DNA from: Diplonema japonicum
Taxonomy: Eukaryota; Protista; Euglenozoa: Diplonemea
Length of the DNA: 64,000 nucleotides
Assembly: GCA_964019335.1 (NCBI GenBank)
Contig: OZ025681.1
Coordinates: 496,001 to 560,000, forward strand
Direction: 5' to 3'
The notes beneath the pieces were generated by a model. It saw only the letters and a list, made by a program, of their open reading frames with translations, did not search any database and was not told the origin of the DNA. Positions 4,354-48,113 of this stretch are shown one piece after another; the first letter of the stretch is position 1; each line of letters begins with the position of its first letter. The position numbers and the translations under genes are program-made.

Positions 4354-4676
4354 TATATGAGTTAAAGGAGGCCGGTGTTGGCGGCGCCCTGCACAAGAAC
4401 TGTCTACTTGATTACAGGGGGCGCACCGCGGCCGAGTTGTAGCTTCTTCTGCGTTCCGCGTCGTGTCCTCAATGCGTGCGGTGTACAGCTCAACCCCAGC
4501 CGGTGCGTCCCGGGTAACCAAGATTCTGCGCTCGTGCAGTTTGCTGCCTGTTCGTCACCCTGAGCATCTGCATTATGTTCTTCCACTCGGGCGCTACCGG
4601 TGATGACCGACGAGGAGGTCAACAGCGAACAACACATCTGATGTACTTCTTATATTTCCATGTTATCCCCACCACC
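4354..4676 (-). mobile_element. SINE family A, full-length, 5' HDV-like ribozyme, tail type 1
   Basis: Near-identical core to 19061-19388; flanked by sense-strand T tracts. Confidence 0.85.
4543..4676 (-). ncRNA. HDV-like self-cleaving ribozyme (predicted)
   Basis: P1 GGTGGTG/CATCACC; P3 ACC/GGT around L3 TCCTCGTC; GG for P1.1; P4 CGCCCGAGT/GCTCAGGGTG; J4/2 ACGAA; P2 GCTGTTG/CAGGCAGC. Confidence 0.75.
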
Positions 4677-4701
4677 TCAAAAAATCTTTTTTTTTTTTTC
4701 T

Positions 4702-19060: not shown

Positions 19061-19388
19061 TGGGGCTTTGATTGCAACACTAGGTGGCGTTAAGCGTGCA
19101 ATGAAGCACGAACTACCTACTTGATTACAGGGGGCGCTCCTCGGCCGAGCAGTAGCTTCTTCTGCGTTCCGCGTCGTGTCCTTAATGCGTGCGGTGTACA
19201 GCTCAACCCCAGCCGGGACGTCCCGGTAACCAAGATTCTGCGCTCGTGCAGTTTGCTGCCTGTTCGTCACCCTGAGCATCTGCGTTACGTTCTTCCACTC
19301 GGGCGCTACCGGTGATGACCGACGAGGAGGTCAACAGCGAACAACACATCTGATGTACTTCTTATATTTCCATGTTATCCCCACCACC
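19061..19388 (-). mobile_element. SINE family A, full-length, 5' HDV-like ribozyme, tail type 2
   Basis: Near-identical to 4354-4676 except for the 3' tail. Confidence 0.85.
19255..19388 (-). ncRNA. HDV-like ribozyme (predicted), second copy
   Basis: All pairing elements identical to 4543-4676; differences only in the P4 loop. Confidence 0.75.
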
Positions 19389-19775
19389 TTAAAAAAAAGA
19401 AACGAATTAAAACTCATAGTAAAAGACAGCCTCATACACCCTTAAAAAAAAGTGTCCCCACAAAGCGAAATCTGTCTGATTTTTTCATAAAATACACCTT
19501 TTTATTTTTACTGGCAAGCTGCTTTAATGAAATTCTTACACCCGGCTCCGAAGCACGCTACAAGGTGGTAAAGATTGCTCAACCAACCGGGGGTCTCCCT
19601 CGTACCTGCGAAGCAAGATGGCTTGAGGCCTTTTGTAAGTGACCTTGCGCTGGATGCGCTTCCCAGAAACCTTCGGTTTTTCTACCCTGCCTGAGCGTGA
19701 AATAAAACTTTGATTTATATTTTAAGCCAAAGGTTTTCAAGAGAGAAAGCAGCTTGGAAGTAAATAAAAAAGAAA

Positions 19776-39140: not shown

Positions 39141-40742
39141 TCATTTCAAACATTCCCCGCTCCTCAGAGGGGCTCCGGACACATAATTAACATCCCATTT
39201 CCTCGCTGCCAATGCATGGTACGGCGCGACACGGTGGCCCTTGGGGTCAATACTGGTGGGGACATGGCTAGCAGGCTGGAGAAGAATACAAAGTGCCTCT
39301 TCACGATGGTAGGTCCAAACCGCACAAGACTGTTCCACAAAACAAAGGGAGCAACAGTCAGAAATAGAATTCGTATGTTCATACTTTGTGGTAGTTGTAG
39401 ATCGGTCCATATCGGGAATGTATTGGAAATTCTGCTCGCTGAAACAGGTATGCTCACCCGGGCCTTCAAGGTCGATGAAGTGGGTGTTTTCTGAAACAGT
39501 GTGCCCGATCTCCTTGAAACGCCTTCTCAGAGCTCTTGTGAATCGCAAGATTGAAAAAGAAATTGTTGAATTCAAATCAACAGACAGCAACGGGGCGCGG
39601 AACCCCCGCTTGCTCTCCGCGGTAGGCGTTGTTTTCTTCTGAACGTAGTACTGCAGCGACTTCGTCCCGTAGTGGTTGTACCCCAACCCGGCTGAACAGC
39701 ATTTTGAACTGTACTCCCGTTTCGCCGTGGAGCCCCCTCCGGTGTACAGCCATTGTTCGCACCTCCATTGGTCCTTCATATCGGTGGCGTAGGTGCAGTT
39801 GTCGGATTTCCAATGAGCGCCCAACCCTTCCGACTGTGTCCAGATTTTGTAATGGTCTTTTCTTTTTTCCGGTGTCATGTCGTCCTTCCAATCTGTTGTG
39901 TTTGTGGGCCAGTGTATCCATCCTGCATGGTCTAGGGTTGCGCACTGTCCGGTGTTCCATATTACTTTTGTGTGGCGGCACTCCCCGCACATTGCAAAGG
40001 GGTGCTTCGAGCAGTGGTTTCCGAAGAAATCGAAGAACGGACCCGGCTTGCTGCAGTCCCCACCGGATGTAAGAAAATTTTCTGTCATCAACCCTTGAGG
40101 GTGCTGTTCAAAGCCGGATGTTCCAAAGCGTTCCCACCTGACAAGAATGTGCGATTGCATAGCGCTGCAATGTGTCTCGATGTGATCTCTAATGCTGCAC
40201 GAGGTGTGTGGGAAGATGAACTCATCTGTATCGGCAAAGAGAAGCCAGTTCACATGCGGTGAAGCATGCTCGAAACATACTTTCGGGGGGACGCAGTTGT
40301 GCACACCAGCAGGGCCGCCTAGTTGCTTGCAACCAGGATGCGATTTGGGCATTCTCCCTGGTATTACTGTTACGTAGCCTAGTTTTTCGTACTCTTGAAG
40401 GATTTTCTTCGTGACTTCTTGTGATTCGGGTGGGTTGTCGTCCACAATCCAGACGTGATCCACGCCAACGAGGAGCTGGTGTTCTAACCACTCTCTGAGC
40501 CATACGCCGCTGCCCTTTGTGCCCGTGCACGTGCCGAAGAACCAAGGGCCTTCTTTTTGTATCGTAATCTTGCCGCCCAGGATCTGGGGTACGATTTTCT
40601 CCTTTTCCAGATTTGCCTTGTACTCGTGAAGGCCGTCCTCATTCACCTCTTGGGAGCGCTGCTCGCTTAGCATGAAGCTGTACACCAATCGAAGTATTAT
40701 CACCCCCACCATGATGCTCAGAAATTGCTTGTCGATTTTCAT
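39141..40742 (-). CDS. Type II membrane GT92/GT2-like glycosyltransferase + PAN domain, 533 aa
   Basis: WLREWLEHQLLVGVDH, WLLFADTDEFIFP, WERFGTSG; single-unit paralog of the 20371 gene. Confidence 0.85.
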   Translation of the reverse strand: MKIDKQFLSIMVGVIILRLVYSFMLSEQRSQEVNEDGLHEYKANLEKEKIVPQILGGKITIQKEGPWFFGTCTGTKGSGVWLREWLEHQLLVGVDHVWIVDDNPPESQEVTKKILQEYEKLGYVTVIPGRMPKSHPGCKQLGGPAGVHNCVPPKVCFEHASPHVNWLLFADTDEFIFPHTSCSIRDHIETHCSAMQSHILVRWERFGTSGFEQHPQGLMTENFLTSGGDCSKPGPFFDFFGNHCSKHPFAMCGECRHTKVIWNTGQCATLDHAGWIHWPTNTTDWKDDMTPEKRKDHYKIWTQSEGLGAHWKSDNCTYATDMKDQWRCEQWLYTGGGSTAKREYSSKCCSAGLGYNHYGTKSLQYYVQKKTTPTAESKRGFRAPLLSVDLNSTISFSILRFTRALRRRFKEIGHTVSENTHFIDLEGPGEHTCFSEQNFQYIPDMDRSTTTTKYEHTNSISDCCSLCFVEQSCAVWTYHREEALCILLQPASHVPTSIDPKGHRVAPYHALAARKWDVNYVSGAPLRSGECLK

Positions 40743-41116
40743 TTTATTTATTTTCTTTTTAAATATCCCCCCTTTCCCCCCTCCCCCCCCACTCTCTCCT
40801 TCTTTTTTGAGGAAATGAAAGGGGGGGTACTTTGTTTTAAAAAAAAAAAGAAAAAAATGGATAAAAAGGATTTTCTTTCTTTTTTTTTTTTGCGTTTCTT
40901 TTTTCTCGCGTTGTAGGGAAGGGTAGGGGATTTTTGAAGAGAAAAAAAAAGAAAAGAGAGGGGGGGGGGGGGGGGGGAAAGAGAAATGACGGTTCGATGG
41001 GGAGGGGAGGGGAAAGATAAACATGCAAACAGGCAAATAAAAAAAAGGAAGAAGAAAAAAAGATGTCTTTGAAGGGAACCTGCAGTATGTGACAGGATCG
41101 CCTAACGACAATCAAC

Positions 41117-44100
41117 TCATCTAGTGTTTGATCCCTTCTGTCGTGGTAGTGCCTTAGGCCCGTCGTAGTATCTCATCAGCAGCTTGGGCGTGAAACCGAC
41201 TAGCGAGTTGTTGAGGATGCAATGCGTTCGCAGTTGTTCCTCTAGGGTCGGGTGGGTTGCCTTCGGGGACGCGAAGACCGGACGAGTGGAGTATCCAATG
41301 ATGGAATGGCTGTGGAGCCCCAGGGTACGCAGTGAGTGTACTGACTTCTTAGTTTCTGCCGGAATCAGGTGATTCCCCGTTCCTGTTCTGTGTGCCCTGT
41401 CCAGGACGTTGAGGATTCTTCCGATTTTCCTAGCCCAGCATGCCAGGTCTTCACCACCCATGTGGATTCTCTCCGTTGCTATGAAGTCGACAGCAAGCTC
41501 CGCCTTGGACACTTGCCCTCCATCCTTGCCCCATTTCAGGGCACTCAGCCATTTGAGGACAAACGGGATCAGCCCCGGGAAGTACTTCTTCCCCAGCCCG
41601 TGCTTGTGATACCAAATGAGGGGTTTCGGTTCTAATAGGTTTCCCGGTTGGAATGGTCTTTTCCAGAAGTGCAGATTGTCGTATCTGACCTGCTTCTCGG
41701 TGTGCAGGCTCTCGAGTTTCCCCGCAATTTCCGCAAACATCAGGTGTAGTTCCTTGACACTTGTCAGGCTTATGTCCATATCAGAGGTAATAATGCCGTG
41801 TAGTCGGGCGCAGCTTGGCCAGCTGACGTGGTCTTGCACCAGCCGAATGCGGTCAGTGTTGGTCGTTCTGCAGTCGGCGTGCGCTGGGCATTGCCAGATC
41901 GTATGTTGTAGTAGGGAGCTGGTCCCGTTCCCAATGTTATATGGTGTGCCACACCCCAGGCATTTCGTATGTGAGCCGTTCATGTCGCCGTAAGCTCTGG
42001 GGTGTAGGGGAAGCATCGCGCCCGCAATGGCACAAAGTATCCTCCTTGCTTTCTGTGGGTTGGTGGTCGTCACCTCGTTGTGGAGGAAGTTCGTTTTCTC
42101 CTCGTCAATGCCTGTTTCGACCCCCTGGTAGGTGTCTCGCTCTTCGGCCAGATCCTCACGTAGTTTGGCTTTCAGCAGCGTCCTGATCTCGTGTTTCAGG
42201 AGCTGTTTGCCTTGCGGTAGTATCTTCGTCTGGAAGTCCTTCCACCTTGACCCTATTTCTCGGAGCCATAGGTCTGCATTGGCAAATGGTCCCATCGGAA
42301 ATGATGGAGAGCCTTGATCCCTTGCTCTCCTGTACGCTTCCCAGCATGATATGAAAAGGGACTTGTTCGAATGTCGTGTGCAAAGTCGTCCCAGAGTAGA
42401 GATGGCCTTGTAGATCGCAGTAGAGTACGGGTCCAGGGTGTGTCCCTTATGGGCAATTCCCAGCAGGGCGCTGGAGGAGCGCATTGGGTTGCGGGCACCC
42501 CAGACGCAAAGAGTGATCCGCTTCTTCAATTTCTCCATCCAAGAGTCCGGGATCGGGTCGAACAGGATGCCGTAGAAGGCGGATGGCAGGATGTTCTCTG
42601 CGATGATCCGTACCTTGCGATCGTGGTATAGCCTAGTTGAGGCGAGGCGTTCTATTTCGGCCAGGGCTTTGTGGACCCTGAGTTATCCCTCCTGCTCGGC
42701 TGGAAGTAGATTTGTACTCCTAAGATTTGCAGACTACTGGTCGTGGCAAAGGTCTCTCCGTTCAACTTCACATTCCCCCGGTATTTGGGTTTCGTTCCAA
42801 ATGACCTGGTCTTCTTCGGGTGTACGGTCATCCCCGTGAGCTTGCAAAGGCTGCCTAGTAGATTTACGGAACGCTGAACCGCGGCCTCCGAGGTAATTGA
42901 CGTGAAGTTAAGGTCGTCTGCATATGACACTGGGTGTGCGTTTCTTGGATTTGCCGTACATTTCTTGGTGAAGATGGCAAGGATTGCGTTGATGAAAACG
43001 GGCGAGATCGGGCATCCCTGGAGTATTCCATTCGTGGTTCGGAATGGAGCACCTACTCCCACGGGGAAACGTAGGCGGCGGATTAGGTCAGAGTAGATGG
43101 CCTTGATCGGTCTCAGGATGAGCTGGCTTAGGCCTAACCGATCGACCAGTTCGAACGTGAGTGCGTGGGGGACAGAGTCAAAGCATTTCTTGAAGTCGAC
43201 CGAGAGACCCCAAAGGTGGTTGCCAGATACTTTTGCCAACTCCACACTGGTGCAGACCTTCGCGAGGAGGTCATCTGTGCTGTGTTCCGGTCTGAAGCCG
43301 AATTGGAGCGGAGTAATCCACTCCTCTTGCCATTCGAGGATGGCTGGTAGTCGTGCGCCAGCCCAGAGCCGATAGAATGCGCTCGATACAGTAATAGGTC
43401 TGTGATCTAGCGGCTCTTCGGATTCTCCTTTCGGGATCATCGTAACAAGCGCGGTCAGGACTGCCTTTGGCCATCGTCCCTCATCCTCAATCCAGTTGTA
43501 TAGGAAGATGAATCCCTCTAGCAGGGCATCTGGTAAGTGGGCGAGTTCGCAGAGCCTCCATCCATCAATCCCAGCGCATTCCTGTTTCTCCTTCTTACTC
43601 AGCACTCTTCGCAGGTCTTCTAGCGTGATCGCGAGGTCGACCATGGGGTGGTGGGTGATCTGCGACCCAAAAGTTTCCTCAAAAGAATCAAAACTCGGCT
43701 CAGGGTGGTCCTCGTATTTGCGGAAGATGTGGCGCCATGCCGACCTGAAGGCTTGGTCTATCTCTTCGACTGAGGTCGAGAGGGTACCGTTCGTGTTTGC
43801 TGCAACTAGCTCTCTATTTGGCTTGTCCGTCACAAATTGCATAATCGCGCTCCGGTTCACCGAGAAACCCGAGTTCAGGTCCCTCCGTGCCTTCACGTTG
43901 CGCAGGATCTTCGAAGCGATGTCCATGTTCCGTTGTCGTGCCGTAACGTTCTCCCGAATCAGGTCTGCTTCCTTGACGATGTTACCCTCGGAGAAGGTTT
44001 CCGGGTGGAACCGTAGGATCTTAATTGCCTTTGCCTTAATATTGTCCCAGCTCTTGCGTAGGTCATACGGCAGGGCCGGGTCTTTCAACAGTGGGACTCT

Positions 44101-45327
44101 CCGCACAATAGCGGCTGCACTCTGCCGGATTTTCTCAAGTGTTAGGTACTTTTTAGAGACTGCCCCAAATGCTGTCATCGTAGACGGAGCCGCCGTCCTC
44201 CGCATGCTGGGGGTATTAATCACGCCTCTGCCAGAGTAGATCGAATTCTCCAGCTGCGCCGTTCCACTCAAAAGGTGTTTCTCGCAAGCAGAAGAAAGCT
44301 CTAAGAAAGCTGCATCCAGGTCCCCGTTGTCTTTCAGGGATCTCAAAGTAGGGAGAATGTCGCTGTACGGAGCGCGGTTCCGGGAGTCATGGAGAGGGAT
44401 GATCTTCTTGGGTATACTGTACTGGAGTGAGGGCTCGTAGAATCTCGGCATATCGATTCTAATTACTAGTGCGCGGTGTGAGGGTACGCCAATGTCCAGA
44501 GTCTGGCAGTCGGTCAGCGCCATCGCAGCTGTCTTGTTCACCAAGATGTAGTCTGGCCTCGTCTTCGCTGTTGCAGTTACGAAGGTAGGAGGGGCTTGTG
44601 TTCCATGTAGGCGCGATATTTTGTTCGAAGCGTCTGTCCAATGTTGAGAGAGGGCGTGCGAGAGGACCGGGGAGTCCATTATCGTCGTGTTGAAGTCTCC
44701 TGTCACAATGACCGGAACGTCCCCCAGCTGAGCCGATCTCTGTAGGGTGTCGGATATTAGCGCCTCCCTATTTCTCTTGGCGTGTCTGGAGCCGTCGCTT
44801 ACCTGGCAGTAGAGGGTGATAATGTGTAACCAGTCACGTTTCCCAATCGCGACTCTTACATGTACCCTTCGCGAGTTGGTGTTGTGGTCCTCGAAAAGGG
44901 AGGATTCCTTCTTAGCTGTCAGTTGCTTGTTCACCATAATTCCCACGCCTCCTCTTTGGGCGATTGAGGGGGATTCTGCACCTTTTGACACCTTCCCTTG
45001 TTGTGGGGGTCCCCAAAAGAGACGGTGTTCTTTTAGGAAAACGTCTTGCTTCGCTTCCTTGTCCATCATCCATTGCCCCGCTTGCGTAAGGGCGGTCTCT
45101 TGCAGGCAAATCACGTCAAACTCCTGTAGTTTGACCCTGTTCAGCTGATTTGGGAGGTTCGTCACGTTCACAGAGATAATAGTGATTTCCTTCTTCCCCT
45201 TCTCGGGCCCCGGATTGGGGTGGACGTCACCGTGTGTCATGAGCCGTTTCCTCGCTTCTCGCGCAATGGACCGCTTCGACCTTTTCATAATGAGGAAATG
45301 TGCCCGCGGGAGGTGGATTATTGCCAA
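41117..45327 (-). CDS. LINE ORF2: 2A-like peptide, AP endonuclease, reverse transcriptase, CCHC finger; one frameshift near 42685
   Basis: DVICLQET, GDFN, PDYIL, SH (APE); QGCPISP and YADD (RT); CLGC...HTIWQC; the alternative frame RVHKALAEIERL... runs into the 41117-42538 ORF. Confidence 0.9.
45205..45231 (-). other. 2A-like StopGo motif GDVHPNPGP
   Basis: RKRLMTHGDVHPNPGP immediately precedes the APE domain. Confidence 0.75.
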
Positions 45328-45495: not shown

Positions 45496-47117
45496 TCAGA
45501 TCTTTTGATTCTTGGGGCTCGGCGACGTCTGTGCGTGGGTCTCCGATTCACCCCTCTTCCGTGAGCTCTCGGCCCTGGCAGCCTCCGCCTGTGCTTTCTC
45601 CTGCGCCGCCCTTGAACTGGGGAATTCTGCCTCCGACAGCTTCACCCTATGCTGTTTCCCCCGGAAGCTCCTCTCGTTCTTGTTTGGTGCATCTTCCCGT
45701 GTCCAGTCCCTAATCGTCAGGGAATGAAGTTTTTCCCCCCTCGCAATAAGCCTGGCGGTGGGAGGGGTGGTGGCCCGAACGAGCCATCTCGAACCTTCTA
45801 GTCTGTCCAAGTGGCTAATGGACCATCCACATCCTGCGAGGTCGTTCATCAAGTCACACGGGTGTTCCCAGCTGAGGCACCCTTCCAGGATATATTTGTC
45901 CCCAGCCTTCCGCGCCGGGAGAAGTATGGGGTTGACCCTTGCCAGTACCTCGCTGCGGACTGCTCCTCTCGGTAGCATTAGGGCCAGTCCGATCGGCGTT
46001 ACCGTGAGTGAGGTGCCTATTGATGCTGTGGGGACATCGGCCGCCTTGATCCCCTTCTTCAACTGGATGACCTCCAGTCTGTCTGCAGCGAACGCGTGTG
46101 TCCAGAATACACATTGGTCTCCGATGCGACCAGCAGTCTAATCGCGTGCTCAGGGTCCACCCGTACCAGGGCAGAGGCGGTGTTGTTCTCGGTCGAGCGG
46201 TTGATCCTGAAGACGTTTTGCGGGGTTACCTTGAAGGGACCCTCCTTGTCTCGCGCCGCTAGAAGTGCCATTCTTTTAATGGCATTGCCGTCCGCTGTTC
46301 GCTTCCACTGTGCAGCTGAGCAATGGTCCTTTGCAATCACTGCCTTGAGGATAACGGTCCCTTTGCTGTCCTTGGGAGGGGCGTCCATGGCTTGCGGTAG
46401 TACTTCGTCCCCCAGGACCCAGGTTTTCATAATGCCCCTCGAGGTTGGGGAGTCGGACTCGGTTCCACCAGAGAATGGTTGGGTGCTGATGATTTTGAAA
46501 GTCAGGCCGAGGGCCTTGAGGCGTGCGGAGAGTTGGACAGGGTCTGCGGGATTAAAATATATTCCTGTCGTGAGTTTGTCCGGGAGCGCGTTGTGTATCT
46601 GCATATCTCCCCAGTGCTGCTGGATCAGGGCTAAGGGGGGTTTGGCGGGGCCCGGTCTGCTCATCCAGTTGGTGGCGGCTCCAAGGTAGGACTTGGTGTT
46701 ACCTCTTGAAGCCTTCCTTGGCGGGGTCCTCTTCTCGTTCGTCTTGGCGGTGGGTTGCTGCTGCTGACTATTCTTGCCTTGCTGCTTGTGCGGTTGTCCT
46801 TTAGGCTGTTGGTATTGTTGCTGCTGAACCTGTTGCTGTTGTTGTTGGAATTGTTTCTGGGGCTGATGAACTTGTTGGAGCTGCTTGAGTGGCGGCTGTT
46901 GCGTGTACGATTGTTGGGGTTGTGGTGAGGAATTTTGGAATTGCTGTTGTTGAACTTGGGCCTGTAGCGGAGTGGGCTGCTGGGGTGAGGACTTCTGTGC
47001 CATCTCGACCAGCTGCAGGATGCAGCCTAGGGTGGTCAGGACGAGGCTTCTGTTCTCCTCGGATAGTTCGCCTGCGAGCAGGCTCTGGGCTCTCTGGACC
47101 AGTTGATGGGGGTCCAT
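45496..47117 (-). CDS. LINE ORF1 (Q-rich N-terminus); one frameshift near 46130
   Basis: ORFs 46059-47117 and 45496-46062 overlap in different frames directly upstream of ORF2. Confidence 0.75.
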
Positions 47118-47369
47118 GTTAAGAGCGTGATGGGGGGAAGTGGAGTACGGAAAGGGGGTTGTGGGATGACGGAGTCGGTCGCTTTCTTACACTTACACTG
47201 TCACTGTCACTATTACTATCACTGTCACTGTTACCGTATTTATACTGTTCTTTTCTTCCTGCTATTGTCGTCACTTCTAAACACTTGCTTGGATATATCC
47301 GGTTGTGGTCTGGTCAATATATTTTTTCTTTTCAAACCGTTCTACCTGGTTCCTTTATTGGCACGGTCG

Positions 47370-47412
47370 ATACCAATAAAGTACAGAAACTGTAGCTTTA
47401 GAATCGTTGCTA
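47370..47412 (-). ncRNA. Spliced-leader exon copy (diplonemid type) followed by GTAT
   Basis: (TAG)CAACGATTCTAAAGCTACAGTTTCTGTACTTTATTG|GTAT; the 3' half is the conserved euglenozoan SL core. Confidence 0.9.
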
Positions 47413-48113
47413 AAAAAGGAAGAGAAAGAAAAAAAGAATACTGGCCTACTGGTGTGGGAGGAGTGGGGAGAGGGGATCTAGCGATAAAAAAGAGGTAAGG
47501 GCCCTGCCCCCCACCGGTATTCCAGTGGCCGAAGATTCATATCGATGAATTTAATCGCAAGTGAAAAGGTTGGCAACAAGTTTAACTACATCTTTAAAAA
47601 AAAAGGGGGTGACATCAACTAACAGAAGATGGTGCAAAAAAGGTGCGCATTTCTAGTCATTGTATCCCACTTTCTTTTTTTCTTTTCGTTTTTTTTTTCT
47701 TCTTCATTTTCGCAAAAAAGCATAAAAGAAATTATAAAAAAAAAAAAAAAAACAGGGAGTGGGCACTAAAGGTACTAAAAAGGAAGAGGGGGAGGGGGAA
47801 AAAAAAAGAAGGAAGTTTACCAAAGATTTGATTCAGAAGAAAAAGAACAAGAACACATTGACTTATTTGTTTCTCTTTTTATTTTATTTTTTTTATTACA
47901 GTTGGTCAAACCCGTTTGTGCGCACAAACAAAGAATAACCCTTGGCCTGTTCTTTTTAATAAAAAAAAAAACCCGGCAAAAAAAGAAGAAAAAAGAGAGA
48001 AAACGAAGGGGTTTTTCTCGTTTTTTTTTCCCCTAAAATCTTTTTTATTTCCTCGCATATGTTTTTTATGGCAGTCACACAGAGAAGAGAAGAAAAAAAA
48101 AAGAGAAAAAAAA

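Follow-up and report, generated by a model that had tools for sequence, protein, structure and literature searches.

A DNA-encoded spliced leader at the 5′ end of a LINE superfamily in Diplonema japonicum

The window element and its leader

The window considered here is a 64-kb stretch of the genome of Diplonema japonicum (62.5 Mb in 132 contigs), and on its minus strand, at 47411-41062, lies a 6,350-bp (6.35-kb) long interspersed nuclear element (LINE) that encodes an apurinic/apyrimidinic-type endonuclease (APE) and a reverse transcriptase (RT). The element is a young, slightly damaged copy in which the second open reading frame (ORF2) is frameshifted, and its first nucleotides are a DNA-encoded copy of the spliced leader (SL). 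Read along the minus strand, the 5′ end consists of a T/C-rich tract (TTTTTTTCTTTCTCTTCCTTTTTT), an AG, CAACGATTCTAAAGCTACAGTTTCTGTACTTTATTG and GTATCGACC, and the ATG of ORF1 lies 256 nt on, at 47117, in agreement with the distance of about 260 nt given in a preliminary description of this DNA. The head (47374..47411, minus strand, SL positions 2-39, AGCAACG...TTATTG) matches the genome's own SL at 37 of 38 letters from SL position 2 and is followed by GTATCG; over the portion CAACG...TTATTG the identity is complete (36/36). The one differing letter is a G at 47410 where the SL has a C, and this variant is also present in read-derived contigs from three sequencing runs. The window has a single occurrence of the 23-mer from the SL 3′ end, and none of 100 shuffles matched it.

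The leader is this species' own, since it matches the exon of the bona fide SL RNA genes. These genes are arranged in tandem, about 350 bp apart, adjoin a 5S rRNA gene and share a conserved upstream block (...GGGAGGTTA / ...CTCTAAGCCTTATCTGGGTTTGGAGAAAGAGGTYCGGGAGGTTA), after which come the exon, (A)ACCAACGATTCTAAAGCTACAGTTTCTGTACTTTATTG, then GTACCCAATCTGATCCATGATCAATAAAC...GAGACAC and a T-run. In Paradiplonema papillatum the SL is 39 nt long (PMC10161547). The true intron of the D. japonicum SL RNA has 90 nt and begins with GTACCC (GTACCCAATC...), so the GTAT behind the window leader is not the start of the SL intron, as had been proposed; the post-SL sequence of the LINE head shares with the real intron only GTA and a CAATAAA-type arm complementary to the SL (the anti-SL arm). 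The upstream block of the SL genes is absent before the window head, and the SL intron is likewise absent after it. Genome-wide, the SL has 227 matches. The leader given in the preliminary description is that of this genome except at two places, which are differences between species: where D. japonicum has ...GATTCTAAAG..., P. papillatum has ...GATTTAAAAG...

In its coding capacity the element is an APE-type LINE, with an APE-like endonuclease followed by RT in ORF2. ORF1 (46059..47117, minus strand; 352 amino acids) is Q-rich, belongs to no Pfam family and found no homologues in the homology search; it probably runs on into the frame at 45496-46062, and at 46120 the window differs from all read-derived contigs by a 1-nt indel. 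The N-terminal piece of ORF2 (42652..45327, minus strand; 891 amino acids) contains an Exo_endo_phos domain (amino acids 67-265, E 3.4e-10) and an RVT_1 domain (amino acids 632-872, E 4.1e-23) and is 46% identical to P0001, a transcript-derived protein of 1454 amino acids. The C-terminal piece, separated from it by a frameshift (41117..42538, minus strand; 473 amino acids), matches P0001 residues 989-1434 at 44% identity (E 9e-118), and a further 1-nt indel relative to all contigs is found at 42679. Since P0001 combines APE and RT and is collinear with both pieces, the two long reading frames are parts of one ORF2, the homologues of which are three transcript-derived EukProt proteins. The endonuclease is thus of the APE type and not the restriction-like one of SLACS/CZAR/CRE/NeSL, and no other nuclease family was detected in any ORF.

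The copies share a common 3′ end and many are 5′-truncated, with 495 candidate 3′ ends against about 60 heads. In the window the end (41062..41116, minus strand) reads ...CTGCAGGTTCCCTTCAAAGACATC, with the terminal sequence ...CAAAGACATC and without poly(A). All 30 of the 3′ ends that were read finish ...CAAAGACA(T/C)C, that is in GACATC or GACACC, and are followed on the sense strand by 4-26 T, an oligo(T) tail or part of the target, in place of a poly(A) or simple-repeat tail. The preliminary description placed direct repeats at 47412-47437 and 41041-41063. These are real, 47435-47412 aligning with 41061-41041 at 21 of 24 positions with one 3-nt gap, but they are low-complexity pyrimidine tracts, and four other full-length copies are flanked on both sides by T-runs alone. 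From this alignment the 5′ flank (47412..47435) and the 3′ flank (41038..41061, minus strand, TTTTTTTCTTCTTCCTTTTTTTTA) plausibly represent a target-site duplication, the 3′ tract being alternatively an oligo(T) tail. The flanks vary by locus and are T-runs, with no insertion specific to SL genes; the view of the element as dispersed and APE-type rather than resident in SL arrays is thus upheld by the ORF2 domains and by T-run flanks at varied loci.

The leader head across the superfamily

SL and LINE form one unit. The unit is present as four copies of 99-100% identity and dozens of diverged ones, with distinct flanks and an identical SL junction, and all 43 of the superfamily heads that were read with their flanks, at different loci, are preceded by the SL or its 3′ part. 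A genome-wide pattern (SL 3′ end, 6-30 nt, ATAAAG) defines 61 sites, including 20 heads (13 C4, 7 C5) known from the pattern match alone. Three head types account for 57 of these sites, namely GTATCGACCGTGCCAATAAAG (13), GTGTCCGACCGTGCCAATAAAG (about 35) and GTCGCTCCCCGTGGCTGATAAAG (9), and all three keep both the SL and the anti-SL arm; the remaining four are chance-matching heads of the D type, a partner family described below. A probe made from the 5′ untranslated region (UTR) recovers three more full-length copies, 99% identical over the 5′ UTR, together with about a dozen heads of diverged subfamilies, at different loci and with the same joining nucleotide. When heads preceded by anything but ...TTATTG were sought with a separate pattern, no true case emerged, the two matches being a point-mutated SL and an unrelated gene. 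The same two are the only matches with a non-T followed by G before the head, and AG-preceded “master” source heads that would regenerate a clean SL by trans-splicing were rejected on this basis. The bracketing of SL and LINE as one unit, first drawn from the window copy, is thus confirmed by full-length relatives at other loci, all of which carry the SL; the two observations named at the outset as fatal to it, a full-length copy without SL and an SL that is a separate pseudogene, were both looked for and neither was made.

One sublineage departs from the common form: in C4b, seven of eight loci start with a T-run and CTGTACTTTATTG only, as does one of about 35 other heads, and one C4b copy has the full SL. 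Internal deletions are seen at L016 (C7:47431-50453), L038, L040 and L044, where the SL and 14-56 nt of head are joined to internal or 3′-terminal LINE sequence, and at L041 and L045 the heads are placed head-to-tail or stuttered. Metagenomes scanned for the SL together with the anti-SL arm gave no match, and a metagenome scan with the SL 23-mer returned 120 contigs, mostly transcript 5′ ends, none of which encodes a relative of the window LINE.

Conservation extends beyond the leader. In a comparison of subfamilies with 72-76% identity in their ORF1 DNA, the SL shows no difference and the 52-56 nt behind it are conserved at 94-98% identity, while no alignment is possible over the other 200 nt of the 5′ UTR. 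In the window these parts correspond to a 52-nt module beginning with the donor-like GTATCG (47322..47373, minus strand) and to a subfamily-specific remainder (47118..47321, minus strand); a variant 5′ UTR with 182 other letters between 47118 and 47322 was seen in read-derived contigs, as were the indels at 42679 and 46120. The module includes the anti-SL arm CCAATAAAG (47361-47353), complementary to CTTTATTGG, the SL 3′ end together with the first G. The hairpin predicted from this complementarity would bury the donor-like junction G/GTATC, a sequence similar to the D. japonicum cis 5′ splice-site consensus (G)/GTATG (PMC12621601), and within the module a possible loop-tail pairing would connect ACCGT (47367-47363) with ACGGT (47340-47336). 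Across nine distinct heads, pairing in the stem, the SL-internal hairpin and the possible loop-tail interaction reaches 99.4%, where slid controls give 31-50%, and the substitutions are one-sided and all wobble-compatible. The equivalent stem in the real SL RNA is TTTATTGGT/ATCAATAAA. At the level of sequence, the result is a conserved potential for pairing, not proof of a structure. An Rfam search of the head returned nothing at E up to 10, neither a ribozyme related to that of hepatitis delta virus (HDV) nor one of another kind; a conserved hairpin and a possible pseudoknot are present.

The head must descend from an SL-bearing RNA that was copied almost to its 5′ end. Copies usually start as a T-run followed by ACCAACG (SL position 2, assuming a 39-nt leader); some start with CCAACG and three at AACCAACG (position 1, AACC). 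Retrocopies of the SL RNA itself (n=3) also start with a T-run and ACCAACG, which implies that the enzyme reaches position 2 on authentic capped SL RNA, and a cap-4 block of 3-4 nt is therefore not the rule. The idea that RT had copied an SL-bearing RNA up to its cap thus survives in the form that copying went nearly to the 5′ end; the 3-nt loss attached to it is not general, and the expected starts at SL positions 3-5 give way to position 2 in most copies and to 1 or 3 in some. The AG-CAACG of the window is most simply read as ACCAACG in which one C has become G, and with a T-run as target the apparent pyrimidine-AG acceptor before CAACG becomes an accident of that change. The A of ACCAACG could be untemplated, with the true stop at position 3, since ordinary D copies usually carry an extra A before their first G. 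At least nine heads (L084, L108, L110, L095, L098, L107, L111, L032, L027) have CC, at L027 CCCCC, between T-run and SL, and two of these are copies with a leader relic (see below), in which the SL must be a new addition. The extra C's could stem from the target itself, from slippage on CCAA or from nucleotides added without a template.

Origin and propagation of the leader head

The non-coding partner family D is central to the question of how the leader was acquired. D elements are non-autonomous, about 1.4 kb long and represented by 733 heads genome-wide (head GGTGGTGGGGATAACATGG...), and their last 490 nt are the 3′ tail of the window LINE. An ordinary D copy has no SL and starts with a T-run, then TAG, AAG or CAG, then GTGGTGGGG, so that a pyrimidine tract and an AG stand exactly at the element boundary; two such starts lie in the window on the minus strand (4649-4680 and 19361-19392, with start examples at 4675 and 19387). 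In nine of the 733 the SL is present, joined to GTGGTGG (5) or to GGTGGTGG (4), which are the products expected from trans-splicing at the boundary AGs. Of the 120 environmental contigs, mostly transcript 5′ ends, about 44% have A and about 20% have G as the base after this leader; together with the D joins, this indicates that the G found after the SL in every family stems from the G-rich 5′ ends of the elements rather than from acceptor exons in general. Unspliced SL RNA has also been copied into the genome, at L089 (G000:C30:483043-486068), L093 (C107:7388-10413) and L085 (C2:149085-152110), and at the first two a full SL RNA is fused through its U-run, as TTTT, to a D head in the manner of U6/L1 chimeras. 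Template switching onto SL RNA therefore occurs in this genome. The chimera junctions, TTTTAAAG/GTGG and TTTTAG/GGTGG, are themselves good acceptors.

The account we favour, with some reserve, is that the SL was captured by trans-splicing at a T-run and AG acceptor formed by the 5′ junction of the element and is now inherited through DNA. Judging from D, integration at T-runs would place a new copy behind a pyrimidine tract, an A and the element's first G would form an AG at the 5′ boundary, read-through transcripts would receive the SL there by trans-splicing, and reverse transcription to within about 1 nt of the capped end would write it into DNA. The pattern across loci suggests that the SL head then became a constant part of an autonomous LINE superfamily, along with the conserved 52-nt module, whose anti-SL arm may pair with the SL 3′ end and the donor-like G/GTAT much like stem I of the real SL RNA. 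Thereafter the head would be inherited from the DNA of the source copy, for which transcription of the template RNA must start at the encoded SL or very slightly before it, presumably driven by a promoter or initiator inside the head, analogous to the trypanosomatid Pr77. Re-trans-splicing of some read-through RNAs, at AGs inside the encoded SL, would yield by-products with a full SL and a relic of 16 or 22 nt, and copies of this form exist. The likely benefit is that an SL 5′ end would make the LINE RNA resemble a normal translatable mRNA, and the non-coding D does without it; an SL on every autonomous LINE head and on 1% of D heads is in keeping with a leader that matters for mRNA function. 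The truncated head behaves as a heritable character, given its presence at seven of eight C4b loci and in one of about 35 heads elsewhere. Among the three options in the preliminary description, a trans-spliced leader, a template switch and a built-in 5′ module, the last fits best, being supported by the lack of AG-preceded heads, the C4b truncation and the conservation of the head.

Alternatively, the SL might be renewed in each cycle, either by trans-splicing of a read-through RNA at the CAG in the encoded SL, with loss of the resulting 16-nt repeat during reverse transcription, or by a switch of the cDNA onto SL RNA or an SL-bearing mRNA, an event that L089 and L093 show to be real here. 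A full SL with TTTCTGTACTTTATTG, the 16 nt after the internal CTACAG, behind it is found at seven loci, including L032/L083, a sister of the window copy at 99.6% identity, and at L109 the relic has 22 nt and is the part after CTAAAG. These relics are proof that elements headed by the SL undergo transcription from upstream, trans-splicing and retrotransposition, and a contig of run X6 spans the unique upstream flank of the window copy and continues into the head (X6 and X7 appear to be RNA runs, with more than 1,000 SL-bearing contigs against 68-84 in X1 and X2). Yet relics are found at only 8 of about 220 SL sites, and the window copy has a single SL and no relic, so that the deletion of the 16-nt repeat would have to succeed in more than 90% of cases. 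Renewal also gives no reason for a conserved 52-nt module with an anti-SL arm, leaves C4b propagating a truncated SL instead of regaining the full one, and is hard to square with D, which is mobilised by the same machinery and has the SL in 9 of 733 heads. We regard it as rather unlikely. Several observations nevertheless weigh against inheritance. Nearly all heads, in several unrelated families, share their start nucleotide with genuine SL RNA retrocopies, and three include SL position 1; a common start is what renewal predicts, whereas under inheritance transcription would have to start one nucleotide before it, in whatever flank is there. In every family the SL is the species-specific one of today, with no family-specific variant seen. 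The truncated C4b heads could be recurrent microhomology joins between a T-run target and the TTT of the SL. The internal promoter is purely conjectural, and the contig-level data of the sequencing runs yielded no empty-site allele. The stem lacks two-sided covariation, which cannot occur in any case because the SL side is fixed.

That the head arose when RT switched from the 5′ end of LINE RNA onto unspliced SL RNA, as in U6/L1 chimeras, with the 52-nt module as a diverged and shortened intron and the head as a degenerate SL RNA gene that may retain transcription or RNP assembly of the SL RNA type, appears improbable. SL RNA-D chimeras do exist, the module shares GTA, the CAATAAA-type arm and the stem-I geometry with SL RNA, and a U-run closes the SL RNA, as a T-run closes every copy of this LINE. 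The mark of splicing, however, is borne by the joins in families A, D and E and in single retrocopies, which coincide with the last exon nucleotide and continue into unrelated sequence; D shows directly how such exon-exact joins arise at AG acceptors, and apart from GTA and an arm whose sequence is dictated by complementarity, nothing in the module can be aligned with the 90-nt intron. Chance adjacency of the LINE to an independent SL pseudogene or a remnant of an SL array would be conceivable for a single locus in a genome where SL relics are common (the 227 matches). It has a negligible probability given that the four copies of 99-100% identity and the dozens of diverged ones share an SL joined at one nucleotide amid varied flanks, and the promoter block of SL genes was not found upstream of the head.

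A further and more tentative reading, which we would put forward as a possibility only, takes the head as a working mimic of the 5′ domain of SL RNA. The element would transcribe itself from an initiator of the SL-RNA type, its leader would be genome-encoded, and its RNA would be exported and translated like a trans-spliced mRNA without trans-splicing. The leader may then be cap-modified by the cell, and the anti-SL arm might keep the donor-like G/GTAT from the spliceosome. Such an element would be a retrotransposon that has internalised a universal mRNA 5′ signal of its host and a potential source of new SL-RNA-like genes.

Related systems and other leader-bearing sequences

The closest parallels come from four settings. 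Dinoflagellate SL-tagged retrogenes (Slamovits & Keeling, 2008, as described in PMC7245778 and PMC6050394) likewise have a DNA-encoded SL at the exact 5′ end, and re-trans-splicing at an SL-internal AG leaves a relic. There, cellular genes accumulate relics, whereas here an autonomous LINE superfamily of a euglenozoan is concerned, in which practically every head has one clean SL, relics are rare and a conserved module pairs with the SL; the window copy itself shows the encoded SL at its exact 5′ end with no clipped relic behind it. Pr77, the head of the trypanosomatid L1Tc/ingi/NARTc/SIDER/DIRE elements, resembles the present head in being a 5′ segment, of about 77-90 nt, conserved across diverged lineages. 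It fixes where the RNA of the element begins and binds TBP and SNAP50, factors of the SL RNA gene promoter (PMC1874656, PMC3185411, PMC8190864). Unlike the head described here, Pr77 contains no SL, its transcripts are reported as unspliced and it holds an HDV-like ribozyme; here no ribozyme matches, and D lacks the head. The SLACS, CZAR, CRE and NeSL elements are also non-LTR elements physically linked to SL sequence, but they use a restriction-like endonuclease and insert into SL RNA genes, so that the SL belongs to the target, in contrast to an APE element at T-runs with an SL exon of its own. U6/L1 chimeras (10.1101/2025.02.02.635956) place a small spliceosomal RNA 5′ of LINE-mobilised sequence, and L089 and L093 match them, with a complete small RNA, 3′ end included, fused to D. 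The window head differs in being the SL exon alone, ending at the splice junction with the intron absent, and in being a fixed family feature rather than a sporadic one. A full-text literature search found SLACS-type annotations, Pr77 and dinoflagellate relics and no LINE with the leader as its 5′ terminus; nor is there such a LINE in the P. papillatum genome paper, and the paper on the D. japonicum YPF1604 assembly makes no mention of transposons, telomeres or the spliced leader (PMC13598402).

These comparisons touch on a puzzle general to Euglenozoa, where every nuclear mRNA acquires its 5′ end through SL trans-splicing and loses whatever lay upstream, namely how a LINE keeps its own 5′ end from generation to generation. 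Trypanosomatids use the promoter/ribozyme head Pr77; here the solution is a different one, the element opening with 38 nt of the leader itself, supported by a conserved pairing arm. Intermediate steps are seen in the same genome, in the form of D with its boundary AG acceptors, rare SL-tagged copies, relics and SL RNA chimeras. The system bears on the re-entry of SL-tagged RNA into genomes outside dinoflagellates, on whether a DNA-encoded leader can replace trans-splicing in translation and cap-4 formation, and on how deep RT reads into a hypermodified cap.

Leader-bearing sequences are not limited to the LINE superfamily and D. A second SL-headed family (L012, G000:C5:1-2037; L014, C6:408-3430; L018/L019, C9; L080; L082; heads GTCGTTCG.../GTCGTCTG...) clusters at contig ends and points outward, and L014 contains an ORF with an AlkB-like motif. 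Its members are fused after ATGGATCCAAGACGA to long (CCCGCAAA)n arrays, in which it is the C-rich strand that points with its 3′ end to the contig end, the reverse of canonical telomere polarity, and several of the repeat junctions join partial SLs. L003 (G000:C2:57030-60052, minus strand) consists of the SL, about 116 nt and A11, and is a processed retrocopy with a poly(A) tail, made from a small RNA or mRNA unrelated to the LINEs.

In metagenomes, SL RNA genes of other diplonemid-like organisms, with the same or a related exon, occur on contigs L148, L158, L180 and L181; their introns start GTATGG, GTATAG or GTACAC, the first two thus being seen in other diplonemids alongside the GTACCC of this genome, and L158 holds three SL RNA genes in which the 5′ half of the leader is different. 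Metatranscriptome contigs L120, L152 and L210 (including Ga0073966_11825003 and Ga0073964_11730856), whose leader is identical to that of this genome, show a full SL followed by a near-complete second SL from position 6 or 7, from which it seems that ordinary diplonemid genes, too, include SL-tagged retrogenes that are trans-spliced again.

Two apparent joints of the SL to positions inside the window element, SL>46826 and SL>45172, in contigs of runs X6 and X7, were judged assembly artefacts, as they fall in CAG/CAA low complexity or at a contig branch and have no preceding AG. Directly downstream of the LINE, an ORF at 39141-41111 (minus strand) encodes glycosyltransferase family 92 and PAN domains; its listed start overlaps the LINE tail, and the real start of the gene therefore lies further in.

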